DNA of 64,000 bases from Thalia democratica (taxonomy: Eukaryota): assembly GCA_965202585.1 (NCBI GenBank), contig OZ241833.1, positions 34,782,001 through 34,846,000 of the forward strand, written 5' to 3'. Made by a program: the position numbers and the translations under genes. The notes under the pieces are model-generated. The model was not told the origin of the DNA. It did no database searches and was given only the letters and a program-made list of their open reading frames with translations. Positions 761 to 25,432 of this stretch are shown piece after piece (the stretch's first letter is position 1; every line of letters starts with the position of its first letter).

Positions 761-3700
761 GCGAGAGAGGGATGTACTGCGTGGAAATGAACGGAAAATT
801 GAGGTTCGAAAAGAAGTTCGAGTACCAGCCATCCTGCTTCCACTGTAATTATAAGAACCCTTCTGATGGCGTCAGGACGTTGATTGCTACCCAGCACAGG
901 TTGTTTTATTACCATAAATGTTCATGTTTATACTTGTTTTTAGATTTTTGTTGCATTTTACTGGTGACTGCCCATCACAGATTCAACTTTATTTTATACT
1001 AGAAATGTTATACTAGCACTTGCTTATATTTTTATTGTTTTTGAAACAATTGCATTGTTAACAGACAAATGCTCGTGTATTCCAACACGACGCTTTTGTG
1101 GGCCGCCTCCCTCAACTCCGTCCCCGTTTGCTTGAAAGTCGCCACACTGCTGTTAGTTTTTTGAATATTGAATAATACGTAGTAGTTTCCTACGTGTAAG
1201 AAAAATAAATTCTTTAAATTAAGTTCAATATAAACTGTTTTACAATATAAAGTTTGTGCCTGTTTGCTTGTTAGTATCAATATTGCTGTTAGTTGGTTTT
1301 ATGTTAAAATGGGTAAATAAGCTATTAGTTTATTTACAGCTTTAAAATTTGTTTAAAAAAACCCTCCTCTTCTTAAAAGTTTATTTTCGATGATACTTTT
1401 TTTTTTGATAAAACAAACTAAATCCTCAAATCACAGCAACACCAAAATACCAAAGATGGAAAGTATAAGTAATATTTTCAACCAGAAGTAATGGCTATTT
1501 TTTTCAGTCTTCAACAAAAACACTTTTTTATCTTTATAAGCATTATAAAAAAATACAAGTAAAACTTGCAATCTATCGCGCAGCAACACTCAAGGAGCGC
1601 TGGTTCTTCTCACTGAAGACATGCACGTGAGCTGTTGCTACTTAGGGACTGTCCCTTCGCTGTTCACCATCGGTAAGTCGAGCAACAGGGCCGCCAGCGT
1701 GGAAGACATGGAGAAGGAAATACAGCAGTTGAGAAAACAAATAAAAAATATAAAGAAGCAAGGTTTTGAAAAGATTTGAAATTTTAATAAAGTTTGTATA
1801 AGTTTACCAACTGTTTGGTTTTTTAGTTGTTTTATAACTTTTTCAGACTGTTATAAGATTTATGTTAAAAAAGAGTTATTAATACGCACAGGTCAACTGT
1901 TAGTTTTTCCAGCAGTTGTGAAACTAGTAGGTAACATACTGTTTATTGTTGTACTATTATTTTTATTCTGTGCAGATAATATTGTCGATTCACCCTACAA
2001 CGTAGCCGATGAGAACCCGCTAACAATAAAGTACCAGTTTCAAGCGGTCGACCAAAACGTTAGTAAATTTTATGATTTTTTTGCATTATGATAACTGTAT
2101 GCTGTTTTGCAGAGTTCGTTCGAGCTGTCCAATGAAATGCGGCCTGCGATTGTGTGCCAGGTTGTTATCGTTTTCACAATTTTTCGAATAATGTCCATAT
2201 TAATTATTAATGCAAAAAATTGAAGTCCAGTTACTTTTTAAACAATTTATACAAAAGAGACACTCAATGCAATATGCCAAATATATATTTTTTGAAACTT
2301 GGATAGATTTAAAATAAGTTAAAGTTGTTGTAACATTTTTGACTTAATTAAAATTGAGGCTATTTGTATTTTAAATAAAAAATCTACTCCTAGTAGGCAA
2401 AAGGAATTTGATAACAAAGTTGCTTTATTTACTTTTTTTGTGTTCATATGTTCTTACTTAATAAGCATTAATCATAATTAGTATTTTCATTAGTATTATA
2501 TGTAATTATAATTTGTTTATTATGATTACTACTATTACTATATAAGCTCAAATTCATCTTTTATTTATTGCTATGTATCCACTGACGAGAATAGTGTGAA
2601 AAGTATTATTATTTAAACTATAATTAATGAGCTTTACCGCAAGGTCAACAATAACATCATCCGAGACAACCTACGATAGGTTTCGTCCTAGTTAAGACTC
2701 ATCAGGCAGGCATAGTCGCAAGAAACCGCTCAACTCTGTTGATGATGGCCGTAATAAGTACTGATTAAAACTGATCAAACGAGCCCAGACTATAATCTCA
2801 CAATAAGCTGACAATGTCTGAGACGTTGGGTTGTGTACGGTTTAGCTGTGTCATTTTTTAAATTTTTACCCACAAACGGTCGCTTCAGCACTTCGTACTT
2901 AATCCCGCTTGGTTAGGATCACAACAGCGGTTTCTCGCGACTATGACTGCCTGATGAGTCCTATCTAGGACGAAACCGGTCGTAGGTTGTCTCAAATGCT
3001 GTTATTGTTTTTATCCTACGGTAAAGCTCATTAATTATTATTGATAGCGAGGAACATCTCAACTCTGTTGATGATGGCCGTAATAACTACTGGTTATTTT
3101 TTAACTATTAAGTTTTAAGTTAGTTTTTTCAAGGATTTTTAAATTTTCACTATGACTGTTTTGTATACTTCTTTTGACTTAATTTATTTTTTTATTGTTT
3201 TTATGTTTTATAACTATAACATCACTGGTTTGTTGTACAATTTAAGTTGAAAAAATTAAAAATAGTAAATAGAACCAAAGTCATGGATGATAAATTTTAT
3301 AAAAAACAGTAAAACAGAATTTATAACAGAATCATTATTAACAAAATCAGACTAGTTTGGTATTTCAATTCATGGTGTAAGCTAATTGATATTTTTGTTT
3401 TGCTTAGCTTTAAAGATATTATTTGCTCAAGAAAAAAAAAACGTGTTGAACAATAGAAAACAGAATTATAAAAAAATATTAAGGCGTTTTTTAATTTTTG
3501 ATCAGGTATTTTAAATTACTTTTGTATTACTCAAAACAGGTAAGCCTGTCAACTTCAAGAGCAATAAAAAACGTAAGTTTATCGTTGCAATGCCCACTAG
3601 GAATTATTTCGTCCGTGAATCACGTTACATTTACTAGAATTGGTGAGTTTTTCAGACTGATTACATTCTTGTTTAAAATTTGACTCTTGTTCCGCATACT

Positions 3701-6700
3701 TAAAAGAATTAACGTCAAGTTCGCACATTTATTCTCTCACTCAAACTATTTGACATGTTTTAATCCAAAACTAGTTTTAAAATTGTTTTAATACAATACT
3801 CGAAATAATTTTTTAAATTTTGTTGTGATGTAAAGTTGAACTTGATTTAAGCTTGTGGGCATGAGTTGCAAATAACCGCTTTAGAGAAATTTGAAAGTCC
3901 AAGTATTACATAATTCTTTATTAGATCCGTAAACCCTTTTTAAAAGGAACATTGCGTTGAAAGTTTGAAGTTTTGTTATAATACTTTTTATTTTTAATCA
4001 ATTTATTTAAAAACAGAGAATAGCGATCAGATGGAAACAAATATTAAACTGGACAGTTCTTGCCTGCCAAGCAGTTTAGACGTACAAATGTCTGTGTGCT
4101 ATCAAAATAACGATCGTTAGTGATTGTATAACAACTTATATAAGTTAACTTGAAAAGTCCTCTTTGTTATGATGTTTCATGTTTAAAAAACAATCATAAG
4201 TGAGTTATTACACCATTTTAAAGGATTCTAAAAGTGCTGTTGATTTACAAAGTTAATATTGTACGAGCTAATAAAAATATTTTGGCTATAATTAGCACTA
4301 AGGTTTTCATGAATACTTGATGTGAATAAGTGTTGAAAATATAATATTTTTATTTAATTAGAAATACCTACCATCTACTATTTTGTTTGAACTACTTTAG
4401 TAGCTTAGTTTAGTGTAAGTTTGATTTTTGGTTGTAAGGTACAAGTTTGGTAAAAATTTGCACTATTTACTCTAAAAATCATATAACTATTTTCTATGAA
4501 GAATGGTTTAAATACTATCTTAATTAATATTTGTTCAAAAAAAAAGCTTATCCACACAATAAAAACTCTAATACTTTTATCTGACAGCGAAAAACGATAA
4601 TTATTTGTTGTTATATGAAATGAGGTATATTGTTGTACAAATTTTCTGAAATAGTTTCATTTTATTCACATGTAAAAATATTTATACTATAATTATTTTT
4701 TTTTGATATATGTTTAAACAATTTAAGAATTCCAAAATTGATGATTTTTAAAGGTAGGTATATTTTGAAATAAAAACATCTTTATCTTTTTTCACTTTAT
4801 GTTGCACTTTCAACCCATATAATTTTTTTTTGTACTGAAACTAACAGTGAAATAATACTAATATCATTAAAATGAGACATGTAATAAACAATCTATCACC
4901 AATTAAGAAACGGGTAAAACAAAAGTTCACAGTCAACAAATCAAGTTGCCATTGACGCTGGTTGCAAAACCTAGTGAGACGCCGAAGAAAATGAAGTACA
5001 GATTCACCATAGAATCAAGCCAACCCTGCGCCGACCTAGCCAGATTGCTACCTGGTAAGTTCTATTTTGTTAAATCGTTGAATGGTTATTTGTATTCTGT
5101 AAAAACTACAAAAATGTAGTTTGACCAGATAAGTACCAAGTAAAATTCCTTTTCTTAGTAGCTAGTTATGTTTTGAAATTTTGTTAACAGTAGAAAAAAA
5201 AATCTTTGACAAACATTGAATTTTATAGTAAATAAATCTTTTGTTTTGGTGCATAAAATTATTTTGAGTCATGCAAATTAATGACCATATACATTTTTAC
5301 ATGCTTGATTTTTTTTGCTAATTTGTTTAAAATAGTTTCAATGAATCCAGTTGTATAGTAATTAAAAGTTTTCTATTTTATTATAACTTCTAATCTAGCC
5401 TAACATTTTTCTAAAACATTTGGTTTTTCAACATTACAAAAGTTGTTGTATACGTTCATTTATTTGTCTTAGTTAAATTTAAACCACCTTACTCTTTAAG
5501 AAAAAGTACTTAAATATATATATGAAATATTATTTGGACGTATCAACAATTAAATTATTATAACCTAGTGTAATAAATTTGTTAAAATAAAACTTTTACT
5601 GTGAAAGTTTACAAATGTATATAAAGAATTTGATAAACATAACATTCATGACAATTTAAAGGTATGACATCACCTGAAAACAGTTCAAATTGTGTCGGAA
5701 TGCAATACATACACGGCCCAAAAGCCACTATATTGACTTCAAAATCCAGCAGTTAGTTTTTAAATTACAATTTCATAAAATTTCAGGTTATCAAGTTCTG
5801 TTGTTTCAATTTAAAAATTTAGCTGTACAGAACTAATAGTGAACAAAAATACGAGTAAGATTAATGAAGTGAAATATATTGATTGTATTAGTTGTATTGT
5901 ATTAAATATTGTATATAGCTATTAAAACAATTATGTACAAAAATGAAACAAACAAAGTAGATAAAAGTGACTATAAAAAACTTTAATATAAAATCAATTA
6001 GTAAAACGAACAGAAAAGCTTACCTATAATGTGTACAATAATCTGAAAACTACTAAATAAGAACTAATGAAACAGTTTAAAGACAAAATAGAGAGAGACT
6101 GAAAACATAAAATTATTATAAACAATGCAGACAAGTACAGGATAGAAAGTGAGGAGCTGCCGTGCATGTGGCTGCTGATGAAGCATTTCGTGCGAAGGCT
6201 GCTGATTGTTCACAGTGACGTCATACTCAACTGCGGCGACAAAATTAGTCTGAACGAACTTTTCGTGCTCATCGACAGGCACGTTGAGGTTTGAATTAGT
6301 TTCTAGAAATATAAATGTTGGAATGTGAAATTTATAGCTTTAAATCATTTCTAAATATTCTATCAAACTTTTTTTTTTATAATAAATAAAAAAGGTGAAC
6401 TATTACTCTCATTTGGATTCTAAAGTAAAAGACTTTGTTTGGGTTATATATTTAATATTCAAAATTTTATAAAATACTTAAATTTTTGTTTAGTGCAGTT
6501 TTATTATTATTTAACGATTCTTAGGTGCGAAAAGCGCGCTTGGAAGTGTGTGGGGTTTTGGAGAAGCGTTCAATGCAGTACACCTCGATCCAACGACGGC
6601 TGTTATCCAAATACAAAGACAAGAACCCCCATCAACCGACAGTGGCAAGTCTGGATAACTTGCTGAAAAATACCCATGAACAAGTTATTATTATTATTTA

Positions 6701-16103: not shown

Positions 16104-18394
16104 TCAATTAGATTTCTTCTTCTTACGACGTTTTTTGTTATTGTTCCTTTTTGAAACACTTTTGTAAAATTCAAGCAAGTTTTTATGAGTTTCACAATGA
16201 GAACTGTTTTTGAACATCTCTTCGTATTTGTGATATATTTGTAGCAAGCAATATGCATCTGTAGCAGCATAAATAATTTGATTTTTATTCAGAGGTCTGT
16301 TCATCCAATCTGATATTTGGTAGGCTTTGTTCAAACTCTTTCCCAATACCTGTTACAAGTGTTTAATTACTGTACAAAACATAAAGTAGATTGTAATATA
16401 ATAACATATGTATTTTCTATATAAAGTTTTAAACACATCTTCTAGTAAAATTACTTACTTACAATCAATAACTAAACGGATAACATAAATAAAATATAGC
16501 CAAAGTAAAGTATTAAGATTACTAAAAATAGAGTAAAAAGAGTAACATCACTTAATTCAGCTTAAATTGTATTAGAAAAATATTTAATTTGTTACGTTTT
16601 TAGCGCAAGTATGTTTTTATTTTATAAACAAAAAAAAAACAACCAGAAAAAGCAGAAGCTTACCCGATAACACAATTTGCTCAGCCCTCTCAGTTGTTTT
16701 TCAGTGTTTGGACAATATTCAAAGTCTGTTCCACGATTAGAAAACATTTTCGAGCTTCTGCTTTTCAGAAAGTCCATCATGCGTGTATCTACAGTCCAAA
16801 GTGCATCTGTGAAATATCTTTTTAGAACTTTTTTGTCCTCGCTTACACCGAACCCTAGGATAACAAAAGCTCCTGATCGAAATATATACTCTACAAACTC
16901 CGTAAGAAGTTGAATGCTGGTTTGCTGAAAGTACACAAAGTCAATGAGATAAACGCGATCACTTACTGCAAACTGAATGAGAGCTAAATCTACTAGTCTA
17001 ACGTTAGTTGTTGAAGTAATCCACTCAGAATCAAACCCTATCGGCAATAAACTACCGTCTGATGGCTCGTTATCCTCAAAGTAGTCGAAACAATCGTTGA
17101 GCTTTTCTTCGGAGTCAACCAAACACACGTTTTCAAATGGGATTGCAAGCTTCAGTTCGTGATCACCTATTGGTATTTCTTCTTCATCTCCCCATACTGG
17201 CGTTCTCCAGTTTCCAGGTTGCATACTTTGGCGGAGAAGATCTGCTTTGTTTTTGTCTTCGTATTTATTTTCAACTATGTAGGCAACTTTTTCAACCAAA
17301 CCAGGGTCGTTTTCAACATACCTGAAGATTAAACTTTCTAAGGAGCTGCCAGAAATTTGTTTGTTTTCCCACTGTTTAAGTAGATATTTGATGTGTAGTA
17401 TAGTTTTCCAAAATTGTGCTTTTTTATTAACTTTTGCGGCTTTTTCAATTTTATCTACGCTTACAGCTTCAGAACTTTGAATTTTTGTTTCAGAAGTTTG
17501 AATTTCTGCTTCAGAGTTTTGGGGCTTTTTGTTAGACTTTTGGTTTTTTTCTTCATATTTTTGAATGTTTGGTTCTGAATCTTGACTTTTAACTTCAGTG
17601 CTTTGAACCTTAGCTTTAGTACTTTGAGTTTTTATTTCTGAATTTTGAATTTTTGTTTCAGAATTTTCAGATTTTACTTCATTGTTTTGAGGTTTTGGTT
17701 CAGAACTTTGAACCTTTACTTCAGAATACGCAGTTGGATATCTTTTCTTTGCTGTTTCTAAAAACGATAAAAGCTTTTCAACAAGTTCTTGTTCTTCAGT
17801 TGTGCTTGTGTTGGAGTTAAGTTCACAAATAAGTCTGCCAACAAATCTCAATACTCTGATTTGAGTTTCCTTTGAACTATTTGTATAATTAAACACACAA
17901 TTAAAATGACGTCCTTTTGCAAGCATTGGGATAAAAACCTTTTCAGTTATTTCATCATCATGAAGATTGAAAAGTGTGTGATAAGCCAGGAAGTTTCTTA
18001 CTTTTCTGTTGTCTAAATGTTTTTTAGCCATTCTTTCTATAAACAACTTATCTAGTTGATCAAGTCTAAATGATTCATGTAAAAGTTTTCCATGTCTCTT
18101 GTTAAACCTGATAATCAATTCAGCCACCTGCTTTTTAACTTTTTCGCTAGCAGAGTTTTTTTCAGTATTGTAAGGTTTAAGATTTGCTGTAACAATCTTA
18201 CATATTGACAATTTATAAGAACATTTTTGTTTTGATTTTTTAAGAATGTCAAGTGCAGTTGTAAATGGACACTCTGACTGTTGAAGCAAATCTTTTACAC
18301 GACTATTAACTATTTCTGTGAAATTTTCTTGTATCAACTGTTCTAGCTTTTTTACTTCCAAATTGTCCGGATAAATTATCTTTCGTTTACTCAT
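16104..18394 (-). CDS. EXD3: Nibbler/MUT-7/EXD3-like DEDDy 3'-5' exoribonuclease, copy A (658 aa, catalytic residues intact)
   Basis: Exons 18394-16664 and 16349-16104, with a phase-0 GTAAGC...CAG intron. ExoI is IGFDSEW, followed by LALIQFAVSDRVYLIDF; ExoII is GFGVSEDKKVL; GLSKLCYRVLGKSLNKAYQISDWMNRPL precedes ExoIII YAATDAY. It has a long helical N-terminal domain and no Mut7-C domain. Confidence 0.88.
17465..17716 (-). repeat. In-frame 21-bp tandem repeat (12 heptads, consensus about K-x-Q-x-S-E-x) inside EXD3 copy A
   Basis: KVQSSEP KPQNNEV KSENSET KIQNSEI KTQSTKA KVQSTEV KSQDSEP NIQKYEE KNQKSNK KPQNSEA EIQTSET KIQSSEA. Confidence 0.9.
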
Positions 18395-21300
18395 TTAAAT
18401 TTGTTGTGCCAAAAATTCTGTATAAGATTATTGATCTTTGTATATAGTACTTTAAATGAAAGTTATTATAGTACAAAAAATAGTAGATGAACATACTTTT
18501 ATTGTTTATCGGATTATTTTCCGAAACTTAAGTTTTTACTGTTGAGAATTCTTCCTAATAAAATATTGTTTTAAAGCTAAACGCATGCATTATTAAAACA
18601 TAAGTTAAATAAATAAGTTTTACAGAGGTCAGCATTCTTATATAAATACAAGCAAATTTTCTTAGAAAAATTTTATCCCGTCTCCCACTTTATAAAAAAA
18701 GTTTTCTTTTATTAAAAAATAATTGAATTAAAAAAAAAAAGCTTTAAACTAAAATAAAAATAGAATAAACCACTATTTGTGACTTATTAAAAATCAAAGA
18801 ACTAATTGTAAGTTTTGTCAAAAAACTTCTCTTTATTGCTTTTAAAAGCTATGTTCATCGCTAAAAAGCTTATCTCGGACCGTAGCTTTCCGACCGCTGC
18901 ATAAGTTCTACTTTCATAAAATTACATTAGCGTTACAGTGCAACAACACCTACTTTTTCTCATTTGTTTAGCTATTCAGTATACTTTATCGAAATTTGTA
19001 GTATCATAATAGTAAAATAAGTCTATAGCTAACTAAAACAAATTTGAGCAAGTTATAAAAACTACATTATGAAAATGGTTTTCACTAAAAGAAGTTTCAA
19101 ACAAATAAAAACAAGTTACTAAGAGTACAAATACTTTATTACAACTCATTAAAGTTTCGTTTAAAATAAGCTTATAGTGAAAATGTTCAACTAAAAAATG
19201 CTTTTTCTTTATCAAAAAGCTCAACTTACATAAACATATAACTCAGTCTTAGCAAAAAATTGTTATAGTAAAACGAAGTTTTACCTTTTTATCATCTGCT
19301 TTGTACACTAAACTGTAGTTTTGTTAATGACATCAAGTTTTCAACATAGCGTTTGGTTAATAATTAACTAGGTTTTATCTTTTAATCACATTTCAAAAAT
19401 ACGTTTTTTTACAATCATTTATTTATCTTCTAAGCAAACACATAACTAGTAATATTTGTTTTAAAAGACTGTAACTTTTGTAGTTTTGTTTTAGTTTTCT
19501 GAGCTTGTATAGATTTATATAGGACACTTAATTGAAAACAACTTTCAAGTTAAACTCAAAAATTTATTTTTTCCCCCAATATAATGTAACTTTTTTCAAC
19601 ATGAAACAATAATTCGTTTTCAAAGCTAATTTCTAAATTAAACAAAACTACTTTATTTGACTTGACACTATAACAAACCTTTCAGCGGAAGACAACTAGT
19701 TTTCAAAATTTTAGTTTTGAATTAATATATATCTAGTAAAGCTATTCAAACTTTTTACCGTTTGAATTATTTGAAAAACTTTTTTCGTTTCGCTTTTAAG
19801 TGTTATTTGCACTTATTTGTATATGTTCTTAGTTTATTTTCAGTATTTATCTTATTGAAACAATTTAGGTTTTTTATAAATTAAATATATTTTATTTTTG
19901 CTTAAATATAAACCCATATAGCTATCCCATATAAATATAGCTATTAAATGAAATACATAAACTTGCATTTTTTTTTATAAGGTTAAACGCTAAAATACAA
20001 TTGTACAATAAATTTTGCTAATCTTAAAAAAAAAGTATTTATCGTGTTATATGTTAGATATAATAAAGTTTTTGATTTAAAATGAAAATAAAGTTTTTGC
20101 AATAAACTTAAGTTTCGCTTAATTTTTTTTACTTAAATTTTTCCTGCTTTTATTTTTTTATTAATGTTTCCACATGATATGCTTTTATCAATACTTATTT
20201 ACTTTCTACGCATAAAATATTTTAGAGCAACTTACAGCAACACTTAAAATATTTATTTTATCAAAGTTCACTCAAAATTAGATGTTGGCTAACAGTATTT
20301 AATTATCATTGATATACATGGTTTAGCTTTATTTATTTTATTATAAATTAATTGCTAAATATATGTAAAAACAGTATTAGTATTTATTGTATATGTCTCT
20401 ATAGTTTTAATCCTGCAAAGTTATACTAAGAAAGTTTTGAGAACTATAATTGAAAACCCCTAAGCTATCAGGAAATATCAAACATTGCATATATATAGCT
20501 GAAATATGCCACAAAAAGGATAAATTCAATTAATAATCTGTAATCCTAAAATATATATTATTTACAGTAAGTTTGTGGCAGGTAATTTAAGTTGTTGCTT
20601 TTTGTTAAGTAAAAATAGTAAGTTAAAAGTTTAGTAATTCATTAAGTTTATAAAATTATATTCTAAAACGTTACTATTCAATAAATTCAATTGTTGTTGT
20701 GCAGTTTAGCTTAGCTAAAGTATGTAACAAACACTTTTATAAGTTTTTCTATTATTAAATTTCACAACAGATAGAAATTCAAAACATAAATTAGTTTTCC
20801 TCTATAGAAAATTCCCGTACTTACATTATAGTATTTACTAACAATATAGTGTGTAGTATGTTATACTTATAAAAATAACACACAAAGGTTTAAAATAAAA
20901 AGTAAAAACATGTGTGTTTTCTGTTATACATGTATAAAACTTATAAAAATATCATATATGTAAGTGTTTTATAATTCTATAAAAACAGAAAAGTCATTAA
21001 AGTCATTAAAGTTAGTTATTACCGTTAAAGTATAAAGTCATTAAAGTTTAATTACGCAATGATTGTCCAAAGCACGTTAATATAATCTAATTCTATTTTA
21101 TACTTGTTTACTGCAAGTTTTTGCAAAGTTATGCTCGTTTAATACACTATATAAATATTATGTCTTATAGAAAGATTACAAAAACTTTATAGTTCTTGTT
21201 TAGAGTTTAAAAAATATATATTTAAACTTAAAGTTACAATAAGTATGTTTTACGTTTTTTTAGTTTCATAACTACCATATTAAAGTTGTAAAATAAAGTT

Positions 21301-22091
21301 TAAAACAGATAAGACATTAATATACTGATTCAAACTTTTTGTTTTAGTGATACACATTATTTGTGAAGTTTGTTATGTATTCTTTATGTTTAACTATAAA
21401 AAACGTTTGTTTCTTACTTTAACTTCGATCTACAAAAGAATGTTTTCAAACTCTATGCATAACTGACTAAAAGTTAGAAAAAAAGTATTTTTTAGTGATA
21501 AGTTTAGCCCATAAATATAAAAGCAAATACGAAAGTTTAGACTATTGATTATGTAAAATTTTGATAATGGTATAAAATAAGTTTTAAGCTTAGAATAATA
21601 CTTGAGTGCAAATAGATTCTACGATATGGTAGTTTTCTTTTTTAGACTGTAATATCTATCAAAGTAAATACGTATAATGAATTAAGAACCTTAATTTTTG
21701 TATCCTATTTTTTATTTTAGCTATAATTCTTTATATTAATGTTGTTATAGTTATAAGCAAATGAATAAATTGAAAATTAAATAAACAAGTTTCTCAGTAT
21801 TTAAAAATTATTTATTTGATTTTCAACTACGAGATACAGGCTATAATGCAAAAAGAAATGCAATAATATAAAACTGAAAAGCTTTTTAAAGCATTCAAGT
21901 TCTTTTTTAATTAAATATTTTTGGCTTCTAAAACTAAGTTATAACTTAAACACAAGTAAAACAGAAGTTTAGTAACAAATAAAATAACAAGCCAAATATC
22001 ATACTTACTGATTTTATATAAATAAAATACTTTGTTTTTACAAAACAAATTAAAAATAAGAAATTGAAAACTATTTAAAAATTAAAGATGC

Positions 22092-24168
22092 CTAAATAGC
22101 ATCTGTATTATTTATTTCTTTTATACGTTTAGTGTATTTTTCAAGAACATGTTCGTAGTATTCAAACAAACTTTCGTGAACTAAACAACAAGAATTTTTT
22201 TCAAAAAGTTCCTGGTATTTACGATATATTTGAACCAAGCAATTCACATTTATGGCAGCATAAGCAATTTGATTTGCATCCAGAGGTTTTTCCGTCCAAT
22301 CTGAAATTTGGTGCGTTTTTGGCAGACTCTTTCCCAGAACCTGTTACAGATGTTTCAAATATATGTATAAAATGTAAAGCACATAAGTTTATTTTAAAAT
22401 CTTTATTAGATACGAAAAAAAAAGTATCTCTTTAATAAATAAACGGTGCACATATTGACTTAAATTTAACTATTACTGTAAAGGCAAACTAAAATAAAAA
22501 TAAACAAAAGTAAACATTTAAAAATCTGAAAAAAAATTGAATAAAAATTAACAAAAATTGCTACAGCTTTAACTGTACGTATAACTAATATTTTTTCTTC
22601 TTAAACCGACTTCTTAAACCATTTATCCTTTTAGCGCAAAAACTTCTTTACTTTAAAACATAAGGCACCAAAAGAAAACATAAACTTACCCGATAACATA
22701 ATTTGCTCAGCCCAGTCAATTTTGCTTCAACTTGTTTAAAAAATATAAAATCTTTAGAAACTTTTGAAAAAAATATCAAGTGTTCGCATTTAAAAAAGTC
22801 TAATAAGCGTGTTGTTTTAGTCCAAAGTTCATTTTTAAAGTACTTTCCTATAACACTTTTATCATTTTCTAACTCAAATCCAAGAATGATATAAAAGTCT
22901 GATTGAAATATGTGTTTTACGAAGTCGGTTAGGAGTTGCATGTTGTTTTGCTGAAAGTACAAGAAATCAATTAGATAAACGCGATTATTCACAGCAAACT
23001 GAAAAAGAGCACGATCTTCTTTTATTGGGTTAGATGTTGATGAGGTCCTTTCTGAGCTAAATCCTATCGGCAACAGTTTGCCTTCTGGTAGCTTCTTAAA
23101 GTATCCAAAACAATCAAGCAGCTTTTTTTCTGAGTCTATGTAAAACAAATTTTCAATTGAAATGGCAAGTTTAAGTTCGTGATCTCTTACTGGGATTTCA
23201 TCATCATCACTCCAAATAGGTGTTCTTTTACACCCAGGTTGCAAACGTTGACGAAGAAGATCTGCTCTTTCCTTGTCTTCAAACTTATCTTCGACTAAAT
23301 TCGCAACTTTTTCTAGCAATGTAGTGTCATCGCCAATAAAGCTGAAAATTAAACTTTCTAAGGAGCTACCAGATATTTCTTTACATAACCATTGTTTTAG
23401 ATATTTTACAGGCAGTTTCAAACGTTTCGTTTCAAAGTTCTGATCTTTTTCTTCGTAGTTTTGGAGCACCGCCGCAGAACTTTGCAGTTTTGCATCAGAA
23501 AATGAACCTGGAAACCATTTTTTTGCTATTTTTAGAAACATAAAAAGTTTTCTGACAAACTTATCTTCATTAACTAAGTCAATGTTGGAGTTAAGGGCAC
23601 CAATAAGCCTGTCAGCAGCTTGTATTACTCTAGCTTGAGCCTCCCTACATCTATCTGCGTATTTCAACACAACATCTAGATTGTCTCCTTTTTCAATCAT
23701 AGGAATAAACACTTTTTCAGTAAGTTCAGTATCGTGAAGCTTGAAAAGTATATGATATGCTAGAAAATTTTTAAATTCCTTGTTGTCCAAGTGTTCTTGG
23801 GCCAAAGTTTTTATAAACACAAAATCTAGTTGATCAAGTCTAAATGCTCTTACTATTTTGGATCTAACTCTTTTGTGAAACTCACAAACTAAGGCAGCTG
23901 CGCTTCTTTTAATATTTTCGCTTACCACCATGTTTTCAGCACTGTATCGTTTAAGATTTTTACAAACAATGTTGCATATAGTCAAGCTGAAATAGTCTTT
24001 GTAAACTGATTTTTGAAGAATGTCTAGAGCAGTCGTAAATGGGCAGTCCGACTGCTGCAGCAAGTCTTTTACACGACTACTAACTATTTTTGTGTATCTC
24101 TGTCTCACTAACTGTCCTAGTTTTTTTACTTCCAAATCATTTGGATAAATAACTTTTCTTGTACTCAT
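22092..24168 (-). CDS. EXD3: Nibbler/MUT-7/EXD3-like paralogue, copy B (575 aa), predicted catalytically inactive
   Basis: Exons 24168-22690 and 22340-22092, with the same intron position as copy A and an uninterrupted ORF. ExoI is IGFSSER (D to S) and ExoIII is YAAINVN (D to N); the ExoII Asp is retained (GFELEND). Confidence 0.85.
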
Positions 24169-25432
24169 TTTAATTTACCATGCTTAGAAACCTGTTTATA
24201 ATTATAGTTGTTTGTAAACAATACTTATTGATAATTACACATGTTATATAGTATATAAGTATAAAATAAATATATAATATATACTACATATCTTTTTAAA
24301 CTTATAAAAAAGTAAAACATTTAACAAAATTAAGTATATTAAAAAGTTTGTATTTAAAAAAAAGGTAATACATTATCTTAAAATTAGTAACTTTAAATAA
24401 ACTGTCCTGGACGAGACATAAAAAAGGTACCTTAAGACAAAGTATTTTGAGCATTCTTTTTTTGTCGTTCAATAAATATAATAATAACTGCTTAAGCTTA
24501 AAATATGTTAGTCAACAAAGTACTTGTTTTCAGCAAAATATGTACACCAAATCATACAAACTTTAACAAAGAATGAATGCACACTATGACTAGCAAAAAT
24601 ATTTTTGTCTACACTTTCGACATTATCTAAAATTTCTATTTATCTTTACAGTGGATTTATTTCGAATTTCTTACAACTTTAATTGTAAACATTTTCAAGC
24701 AAACAAAGCTTAAAACAAATAAAAAATGAAATATTCATTTAGCAAAGTTATTTAAACTACACAAATACCTACATAATTCTGTTTAAAAAACAACAAATTT
24801 TAGTTTTTTTATAGATAAACAATAGCTTGAAAAACGAGTTGACTTTCGACTTAATTTTATTTTAGACTTTAATAATGTTCAAAGCTGCAATTGATAAATT
24901 GTGACTAGCGTGATTTTTTATTTTTTTATTCAAAAAAACTAACTCATGTTGAATAACTAAAACTAAATTTACAAACAATATTATATATAAAAAAAGCAAC
25001 TAGTTATAAAATGTTAATTTTCCTATTTAGGCTGAATAATGTGTTTGAAATGAAGTTTAAAGCTTTCGGTTAATGATTAAATAAGTTTTATTTAAATAAA
25101 TAAACAAAACAGCACACTTCTCCGCATTCTATGTGTTTATCTCCTATGATTATAAAAACAACTAGTATTTGTTTTACAAAGCTGCAACTTTTAAAGTGTA
25201 AATTTTTTGTTAGTTTGTAAGCTTTTAAAAAATTATACAACTTAAAGCAAAAGTTTGTTATGTTACTGTATGCAATGTAGTTTATGTACCAGAAAAACAA
25301 TAATTTTATTTAATTTTGTTGTCCGAAACAAGCAGAGCAGTTTTTAGAATTATAAGACTTTAAATTAATCTTTAAGCCTAAAACCAAGAGTTTTAACTTT
25401 TTTATTTATGTCAAGCAAATTTTTATCTAAAT

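Follow-up and report, generated by a model that had tools for sequence, protein, structure and literature searches.

A maintained dead-site paralogue in an expanded, MUT7-C-less branch of the MUT-7/EXD3/Nibbler family of Thalia democratica

We analysed a 64,000-nucleotide stretch of the Thalia democratica genome (hereafter the window; C9:34782001-34846000 of the 802-Mb assembly GCA_965202585.1, contig OZ241833.1), which contains two paralogous two-exon genes, A and B, each encoding a basic helical N-terminal domain followed by an exonuclease (EXO) domain. Gene B, whose catalytic site is altered, still codes for protein and is maintained by purifying selection that is relaxed but real; it is thus a pseudonuclease and not a pseudogene. 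In window coordinates, the two genes are built as follows.

16104-18394, minus strand: gene A, two exons, 658 amino acids
16664..18394, minus strand: exon 1 of A, 577 codons, with the basic helical N-terminal domain, the 7-residue repeat insert, the middle helices and the EXO domain with ExoI and ExoII
17468..17723, minus strand: 21-nucleotide tandem repeat of A, encoding a 7-residue unit rich in Ser/Glu/Lys/Gln; not in B
16350..16663, minus strand: intron of A, 314 nucleotides, GTAAGC..TAACAG, exactly spliced out in the mRNA contig L002
16104..16349, minus strand: exon 2 of A, 81 codons and stop, with the ExoIII motif YAATDA and a Lys/Arg-rich C-terminal tail
22092-24168, minus strand: gene B, two exons, 575 amino acids
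22690..24168, minus strand: exon 1 of B, 493 codons, with the basic helical N-terminal domain, the middle helices and the EXO domain with an altered ExoI and a kept ExoII
22341..22689, minus strand: intron of B, 349 nucleotides, GTAAGT..TAACAG, exactly spliced out in the mRNA contig L001
22092..22340, minus strand: exon 2 of B, 82 codons and stop, with the altered ExoIII motif YAAINV and without the basic tail

Both introns are of the GT..AG type with the acceptor TAACAG, and both fall on the same codon boundary, between CYR and VLGK. Protein identity between A and B is 47% over exon 1 (E 3e-175) and 53% over exon 2, amounting to about 50% overall and lying far above chance. Their difference in length is accounted for by an 84-residue low-complexity insert in A, rich in Ser/Glu/Lys/Gln and consisting of about a dozen 21-nucleotide repeats, which is also present in the A-type orthologues P0001 and P0002. 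A Lys/Arg-rich C-terminal tail is likewise found in A and not in B, and the N-terminal domain of B (isoelectric point 9.5, net charge +12 compared with +13 in A) is as basic as that of its neighbour. The A-type orthologous spliced mRNA contig, L002, aligns to 18417..16662. Within the repeat insert, comparison of A with A', the A-type orthologue P0001, gives more nonsynonymous than synonymous divergence (dN 0.17, dS 0.11), opposite to the remainder of the gene.

The catalytic motifs of the two proteins, all read on the minus strand, are these.

17024..17032, minus strand: ExoI Asp-x-Glu of A, GAT (17030-17032) and GAG, intact, followed by Trp (TGG)
16835..16837, minus strand: ExoII Asp of A, GAC, intact
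16257..16271, minus strand: ExoIII Tyr-x3-Asp of A, TAT and GAT (16257-16259), intact
23047..23058, minus strand: ExoI of B, Asp replaced by Ser (AGC, 23056-23058), Glu kept, Trp replaced by Arg (AGG, 23047-23049)
22861..22863, minus strand: ExoII Asp of B, GAT, kept
22248..22262, minus strand: ExoIII of B, Tyr (TAT) kept, Asp replaced by Asn (AAT, 22248-22250)

Checked codon by codon, all five DEDDy residues are present in A where an earlier note on this DNA had placed them, and the three changes it had read in B (ExoI Asp to Ser, the adjacent Trp to Arg, and ExoIII Asp to Asn) are each borne out. B therefore lacks two of the four metal-binding carboxylates, those of the ExoI and ExoIII Asp residues. 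The orthologue of B in a related organism, B' (protein P0003), shares the same Ser, Arg and Asn and has additionally exchanged the ExoIII Tyr for His; the codons for the shared Ser (AGC in B, AGT in B') and Asn (AAT, AAC) differ synonymously. In a HMMER alignment to 7jw2, the crystallised EXO chain of Aedes Nibbler, the B-type Ser falls opposite the Ala of 'IAFASEW', an Ala that we read as probably representing an engineered inactive form, and the solved structures matching the B-type model include 3saf, an Asp-to-Asn active-site mutant of human RRP6. The catalytically inactive versions of Nibbler (D435A), MUT-7 (D453A) and EXD3 (D399A) each carry one catalytic Asp-to-Ala change (PMC11347159). 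The substitutions in B argue strongly that its catalysis has been lost. A complete DEDDy set is found in A, in its sisters C, D, E (locus L018, whose exon 2 is otherwise broken) and F, and in the canonical copies introduced below, and judged by their sequences A, C, D and F should be competent nucleases.

Several lines of evidence bear on whether B is a gene or a relic. Contig L001 (JGI, sample 3300019144), which encodes B' and is 83% identical to B at the protein level, aligns to 24184..22688 (89.8%) and then directly to 22341..22110, joining 22690 to 22340 exactly. Because this alignment passes straight across the predicted junction of B, L001 is the spliced mRNA of a B-type gene in a related marine organism, and the predicted junction is used. 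This agrees with the earlier observation that B keeps a 575-codon open reading frame and its splice sites in spite of its divergence from A, and the gene model stands as proposed. With the first 45 codons left out of the estimates of the nonsynonymous to synonymous rate ratio (dN/dS), since L001 and L002 have identical starts, B and B' differ by dN 0.076 and dS 0.131, giving a dN/dS of 0.58 (NG86) or 0.62 (YN00) with a bootstrap range of 0.40-0.89, and only 0.8% of replicates reach 1 or more. By domain, the ratio is 0.60 in the N-terminal part of B and 0.55 in EXO; the corresponding ratios for A against A' are 0.37 (overall) and 0.20 (EXO). Pairwise distances were also divided by a three-point split, using C or D as the outgroup; this estimate, approximate because outgroup dS is close to saturation, assigns dN of about 0.24 to the B lineage and about 0.10 to the A lineage at similar dS, corresponding to a dN/dS since the A/B split of about 0.45-0.53 in the B lineage and 0.2-0.3 in the A lineage, with no phase above 1 seen. 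When neutral evolution was simulated with the local AT-rich composition over half the B-B' dS, indels not yet being counted, sequences acquired a mean of 7 premature stops and the frame stayed open in 3/10,000 trials per lineage.

These results, namely the relative's spliced mRNA, a dN/dS below 1, the synonymous differences between B and B' in the Ser and Asn codons, a frame that rarely stays open under neutrality and the visibly broken state of sister loci in the same genome (see below), are why we regard B as a maintained gene, and they make it very probable that B is a selected dead paralogue. The earlier note had likewise taken B to be selected. A single marine metatranscriptome run contains 6% of the words of B, as would fit a transcript about 90% identical such as L001, and was not counted as evidence.

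The family to which A and B belong was established from profiles, names and predicted folds. Pfam assigns PF01612 and no further domain to either protein; in A the two exons score 24.7 bits (exon 1) and 40.3 bits (exon 2) against a cut-off of 23.6, and for the full-length orthologues the scores are 75.8 bits in the A type and 46.4 bits in the B type. The MUT7-C domain, PF01927, was not found by Pfam scan in A, B, P0001 or P0003, and is present in the genome's own locus L024 and in all named homologues scanned. An exhaustive profile search with the subfamily alignment recovered 242 proteins, among which the nearest named matches are annotated as 'exonuclease mut-7 homolog' of Ciona, Clavelina, Crassostrea (oyster), Priapulus and Centruroides (scorpion), and carry PF01612 followed by PF01927. 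Several named mut-7 homologues match the profile from position about 13-35 to 493, that is, from the N-terminal domain through EXO. The B-type model (P0003) has a mean predicted local distance difference test score (pLDDT) of 84.8 and an RNase D-like EXO domain; the A-type model (P0001) has a mean pLDDT of 62 and is poor in the repeat and tail. Foldseek searches of Swiss-Prot with both models return the same five best matches, namely human EXD3, fly Nibbler, mosquito Nibbler, worm MUT-7 and ZK1098.3, and the alignments to EXD3, Nibbler and MUT-7 cover both domains, running from residue 1 to about residue 540 in the B-type model and to about residue 620 in the A-type model. Among solved structures, the B-type model is matched best by two Nibbler EXO domains, 7jw2 and 7jw6 (template-modelling scores by target 0.76 and 0.70), which are also matched by sequence alone (E 1e-8 and 2e-6). 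A and B are accordingly members of the MUT-7/EXD3/Nibbler family, as had been proposed from the window sequence. The MUT7-C RNA-binding domain is a feature of canonical family members, and its loss had been recorded in one survey only in drosophilids (PMC11347159).

A six-frame search of the whole assembly for further loci places the two genes in a wider expansion. At least 10 intact MUT-7-like genes are present in the genome, and at least six loci belong to the MUT7-C-less subfamily of A and B. Sisters C and D lie on the same contig some 120-145 kb away and F lies on C10, all three intact, with complete DEDDy residues and the same intron. In a maximum-likelihood tree, A-F and their metagenomic relatives form one clade with a support of 100/100 and a stem length of 1.1, separate from the group of L024, which has MUT7-C, and from the Ciona and Clavelina mut-7 homologues. 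Because this clade stands apart from both, A and B belong to a lineage-specific subfamily with an independent loss of MUT7-C. Within it, the stem branch of B (0.47) is four times longer than that of A (0.11). The close relatives all come from Tara Oceans plankton metagenomes and metatranscriptomes, and those homologues with names that lie nearest are from tunicates, as would be expected of a pelagic tunicate. Word-based protein searches, run with A, B or the EXO region as query, had returned only 13 relatives.

The canonical mut-7 homologue of the genome is L024 on C4 (open reading frame 2127-4541, minus strand), a single-exon gene of 805 amino acids with PF01612 and PF01927. Its tandem neighbour L025 (open reading frame 1983-3842, minus strand; both within C4:72456500-72473000) encodes 620 amino acids without MUT7-C, and L022 on C8 is another MUT7-C-less relative of L024. 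The description of A and B as a tandem Nibbler/MUT-7 pair consequently holds in so far as they are adjacent paralogues, and fails in two respects: the pair is not isolated among the family members of this genome, and the tree places neither gene in one-to-one orthology with Nibbler or EXD3, the canonical position being occupied by L024. Tandem duplication explains the adjacency of A and B, which hence is no evidence of partnership.

Other subfamily loci are visibly damaged. L018 (locus E), L019 and L021 contain stops, frameshifts or insertions; L018 has a stop and a frameshift in exon 2, although exon 1 is intact in its metagenomic orthologue P0006, and L019 is the broken orthologue of P0007, to which it is 88% identical. 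L016-L019 form a second subfamily cluster at C9:34643000-34680000, 105-140 kb from the window, in which C and D are young intact duplicates (dN/dS 0.35 at dS 0.09). At the protein level, exon 2 of A shares 84-86% identity with exon 2 of C and D (L016 3211-3429 and L017 2827-3045, compared with window 16107-16349), despite exon 1 of C and D being only about 50% identical to exon 1 of A. Either very strong constraint on the ExoIII exon in active members or exchange between paralogues could produce this pattern.

Two further arrangements of the fold were found. Loci L026 (C2:51303000-51310500, open reading frame 2476-5907, minus strand) and L027 (C6:64550500-64558000) are single-exon genes of 1144 residues with two MUT-7-like units per chain, the first EXO site being degenerate (Asp-x-Ile, Thr for the ExoII Asp and Lys for the ExoIII Asp) and the second having a complete DEDDy set; a matching sequence of 1144 residues, P0018, is present in JGI/IMG. 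At C9:27167000-27366100, and also on contigs C321 and C496, there are about 40 near-identical frames of 181-193 codons that comprise the EXO part of exon 1 only. These copies (for example L028 3018-3563 and 9205-9750) share about 60% identity with A, carry Val in place of the ExoI Asp and are organised as a higher-order tandem array. They have no N-terminal domain and no exon 2 was found nearby, and the array looks like an amplified gene fragment.

The changes that distinguish the B lineage are unevenly spread along the protein. The members with an intact catalytic site have 112 columns conserved at 90% or more, and at 19 of these B and B' carry shared changes, with the highest proportion in EXO (13/60, 22%), followed by the N-terminal domain (4/29, 14%) and the middle region (2/23, 9%); the ExoIII Asp-to-Asn change falls outside the 90% filter and is additional to the 19. 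In Nibbler, basic patches of the N-terminal domain are needed for RNA binding, and this domain has been proposed to recruit the enzyme to Argonaute-bound RNA (PMC11347159). It is because EXO has changed most, and the N-terminal domain is better kept and still basic, that we infer a mechanism in which binding would be kept and cutting lost.

Nor is B the only dead-site member of the subfamily. A separate clade in the relatives contains P0008 and P0009, with Asn in ExoI and Lys in ExoII, and P0010, with His and Lys in ExoI and a deleted ExoII next to an exon 2 that keeps YAATDA; P0013 has Asn and Met at catalytic sites. Constraint is evident here too, with a dN/dS of 0.46 (0.35-0.61) between P0008 and P0009 at dS 0.38, and of 0.40-0.45 between each of these and P0010. 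Well-supported branches of the tree force at least two independent catalytic losses and, since this second clade in relatives is also constrained, dead-site members are a repeated and retained outcome in the family.

The account that we favour runs as follows. A and B are tandem paralogues in a lineage-specific branch of the MUT-7/EXD3/Nibbler family that kept the N-terminal helical domain and EXO and lost MUT7-C. Two of the four carboxylates of B were lost before its split from the orthologue of the related species, and from that point B has been kept under relaxed purifying selection as a protein that, judging by the relative's mRNA and the B-type structural model, is expressed, correctly spliced and well folded. 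Its basic N-terminal domain and a non-cleaving EXO pocket could bind single-stranded RNA 3' ends, or RNAs bound by Argonaute or PIWI proteins, and as a non-catalytic binder B might shield RNA 3' ends from the active paralogues or recruit other factors to them, much as EXD1 and Exuperantia employ dead DEDD folds. Taken as a whole, the picture of a pseudonuclease that binds RNA 3' ends, or complexes of RNA with Argonaute or PIWI proteins, without cutting them and so shields or routes them seems to us reasonably likely. The narrower mechanism, in which B is specifically a small-RNA binder, is tentative and falls slightly short of an even chance. RNA binding by B, its link to small-RNA pathways and its action as an antagonist or adaptor are suggested by analogy, and so is the earlier proposal that B serves as a partner, regulator or decoy of A, or as a small-RNA factor, for which the models are Nibbler, MUT-7 and the known pseudonucleases.

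Several points weigh against this account. The B lineage is represented by two sequences only, so that the estimate of selection is one pairwise comparison, and a search of the JGI metagenome contigs found no further B-type loci. A dN/dS of 0.58 is high for an essential gene, and EXO is much less constrained in B than in A (0.55 compared with 0.20). The pocket is further eroded in B', where Tyr has become His and the RPL motif is now KAP, so a pocket-based function is not assured. The evidence for transcription of B comes from a relative's mRNA. Any small-RNA role of this subfamily is putative, as are any RNA binding, localisation or interactions of B. Finally, the first 115 nucleotides of L001 and L002, comprising the 5' untranslated region and 30 codons, are identical, which could reflect gene conversion, a third paralogue or an assembly chimera. 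A' is itself a mosaic, with 66-79% identity to A and 67-77% to B over codons of about 46-180. Conversion of the N-terminal domain of A' from B' was considered and rejected, as A' is about equally far from A and B over this interval.

How B might otherwise be explained depends on which of its features is emphasised. The raised dN/dS of B relative to A (0.58 compared with 0.37), together with Pfam scores just below the cut-off for its separate exons, could describe a pseudogene that has not yet been hit by a disabling mutation. We rejected B as a pseudogene on the bootstrap, the neutral simulation and the broken sister loci: its frame is open in two lineages when neutral trials preserve it in 3/10,000 per lineage, dN/dS is below 1 in 99% of bootstraps, a B-type mRNA is spliced in a relative, and where this genome does contain true pseudogenes of the family the damage is plain to see, all of which leaves this reading very improbable. 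An equally slim chance attaches to B still cutting RNA with a non-canonical active site. The ExoI Glu and ExoII Asp remain, the ExoIII Tyr remains in B if not in B', and the B type has a confident predicted fold; against this, two of four carboxylates are gone from B where a single Asp-to-Ala change inactivates three family members (PMC11347159), the matched structures include the Asp-to-Asn mutant of human RRP6 (3saf), and B' has lost the ExoIII Tyr as well.

More weight is due to readings in which B is a functional dead protein with a different task. B could have taken a new role outside small-RNA pathways, as a non-catalytic RNA-binding adaptor in, for instance, mRNA localisation or storage in the manner of Exuperantia and Egalitarian. 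DEDD-type pseudonucleases are known in mRNA localisation (PMC8097288), an Egalitarian homologue is among the weaker fold matches (rank 21), B lacks the basic C-terminal tail and repeat insert of A and may therefore differ from it in cell location, and its stem branch is four times that of A. Its closest relatives by sequence and by fold, over both domains, are nonetheless MUT-7 and Nibbler, and its better-kept part is the N-terminal domain, for which Argonaute recruitment has been proposed in Nibbler (PMC11347159), so that we consider such a role unlikely. Less likely again is that B is an obligate physical partner of A, a dead subunit that tunes or targets the live one. The genes are adjacent in the same orientation, and the two-unit proteins of L026 and L027, with a degenerate first site and an intact second, offer a fusion-type hint of dead-live cooperation. 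Adjacency follows from tandem duplication alone, however; A and B separated long ago (dS about 0.87), the genome contains three further active and intact paralogues that have no dead neighbour, and the two-unit protein, at about 30% identity, comes from another branch and is only a hint where A and B are concerned.

Known systems offer partial parallels to this arrangement. Drosophila Nibbler (Nbr, Q9VIF1) and mosquito Nibbler share with A and B the helical N-terminal domain and the DEDDy EXO domain, and the fly protein also lacks MUT7-C. Compared with Nibbler, A has the complete DEDDy set and B lacks two catalytic carboxylates; neither is a one-to-one orthologue, and their expansion lost MUT7-C separately, beside a canonical gene that retains it. 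Our literature search found no dead natural paralogue of Nibbler. C. elegans MUT-7 and vertebrate EXD3 belong to the same family by profile, names and fold, and differ by their MUT7-C domain, which A-F lack. In C. elegans, MUT-7 has a paralogue, ZK1098.3, that combines N-terminal and EXO domains with a reduced C-terminus and does not stand in for MUT-7 (PMC11347159). ZK1098.3 ranks among the top fold matches to the A and B types, and stems from a separate nematode duplication.

Among pseudonucleases, EXD1, a piRNA biogenesis factor with an inactive DEDDy-like domain, is listed as a pseudonuclease (PMC8097288) and is a case of a DEDD-type fold kept for small-RNA work after its active site had ceased to function. 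EXD1 appears as a weak fold match (rank 29) and differs in belonging to another PF01612 branch and in lacking the MUT-7-type N-terminal domain, whereas B is a recent derivative of an active MUT-7-like gene. In Exuperantia, Egalitarian and Maelstrom, a nuclease fold that lost its catalytic residues has been put to use in RNA binding (PMC8097288), but these are ancient single-copy proteins, unrelated or distant in sequence, and B is a recent tandem duplicate. The fungal Ssd1-type pseudonucleases of the Dis3/RNase II group underwent repeated independent catalytic loss after duplication, the dead copies being kept (PMC8097288). This is the same repeated loss and retention as described here, in a different nuclease superfamily and kingdom.

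The earlier reading was therefore correct in essence, in that a selected pseudonuclease stands beside an active paralogue; its framing as a pair was too narrow for what is a family, and the mechanism it suggested is unproven. As far as we have found, B is the first conserved dead-site member of the MUT-7/Nibbler family, and it lies within a previously undescribed MUT7-C-less expansion. Nibbler, MUT-7 and EXD3 are usually single-copy trimmers, and to our knowledge their roles outside flies and worms are largely unknown. Three things are new for the family: MUT7-C has been lost a second time, independently; the number of intact genes has grown to at least 10; and members have repeatedly been turned into selectively kept dead-site proteins. 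A far-reaching and doubtful extension would be that in pelagic tunicates the MUT-7/Nibbler family has become a multi-member system of RNA 3'-end control. Dead members, which emerged on two or more occasions as genes of their own and on one occasion as the leading half of a two-unit chain, would in that case act as antagonists or targeting subunits of the active trimmers, and the ratio of live to dead members would set the length or stability of small RNAs. Should the dead copies share the substrates of the live ones, they would constitute a natural experiment in the restraint of trimming, and would provide separation-of-function variants that bind without cutting, in a family for which substrate recognition is still poorly understood. 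Should their task be a different one, they would add a clean and recent case to the pseudonucleases.

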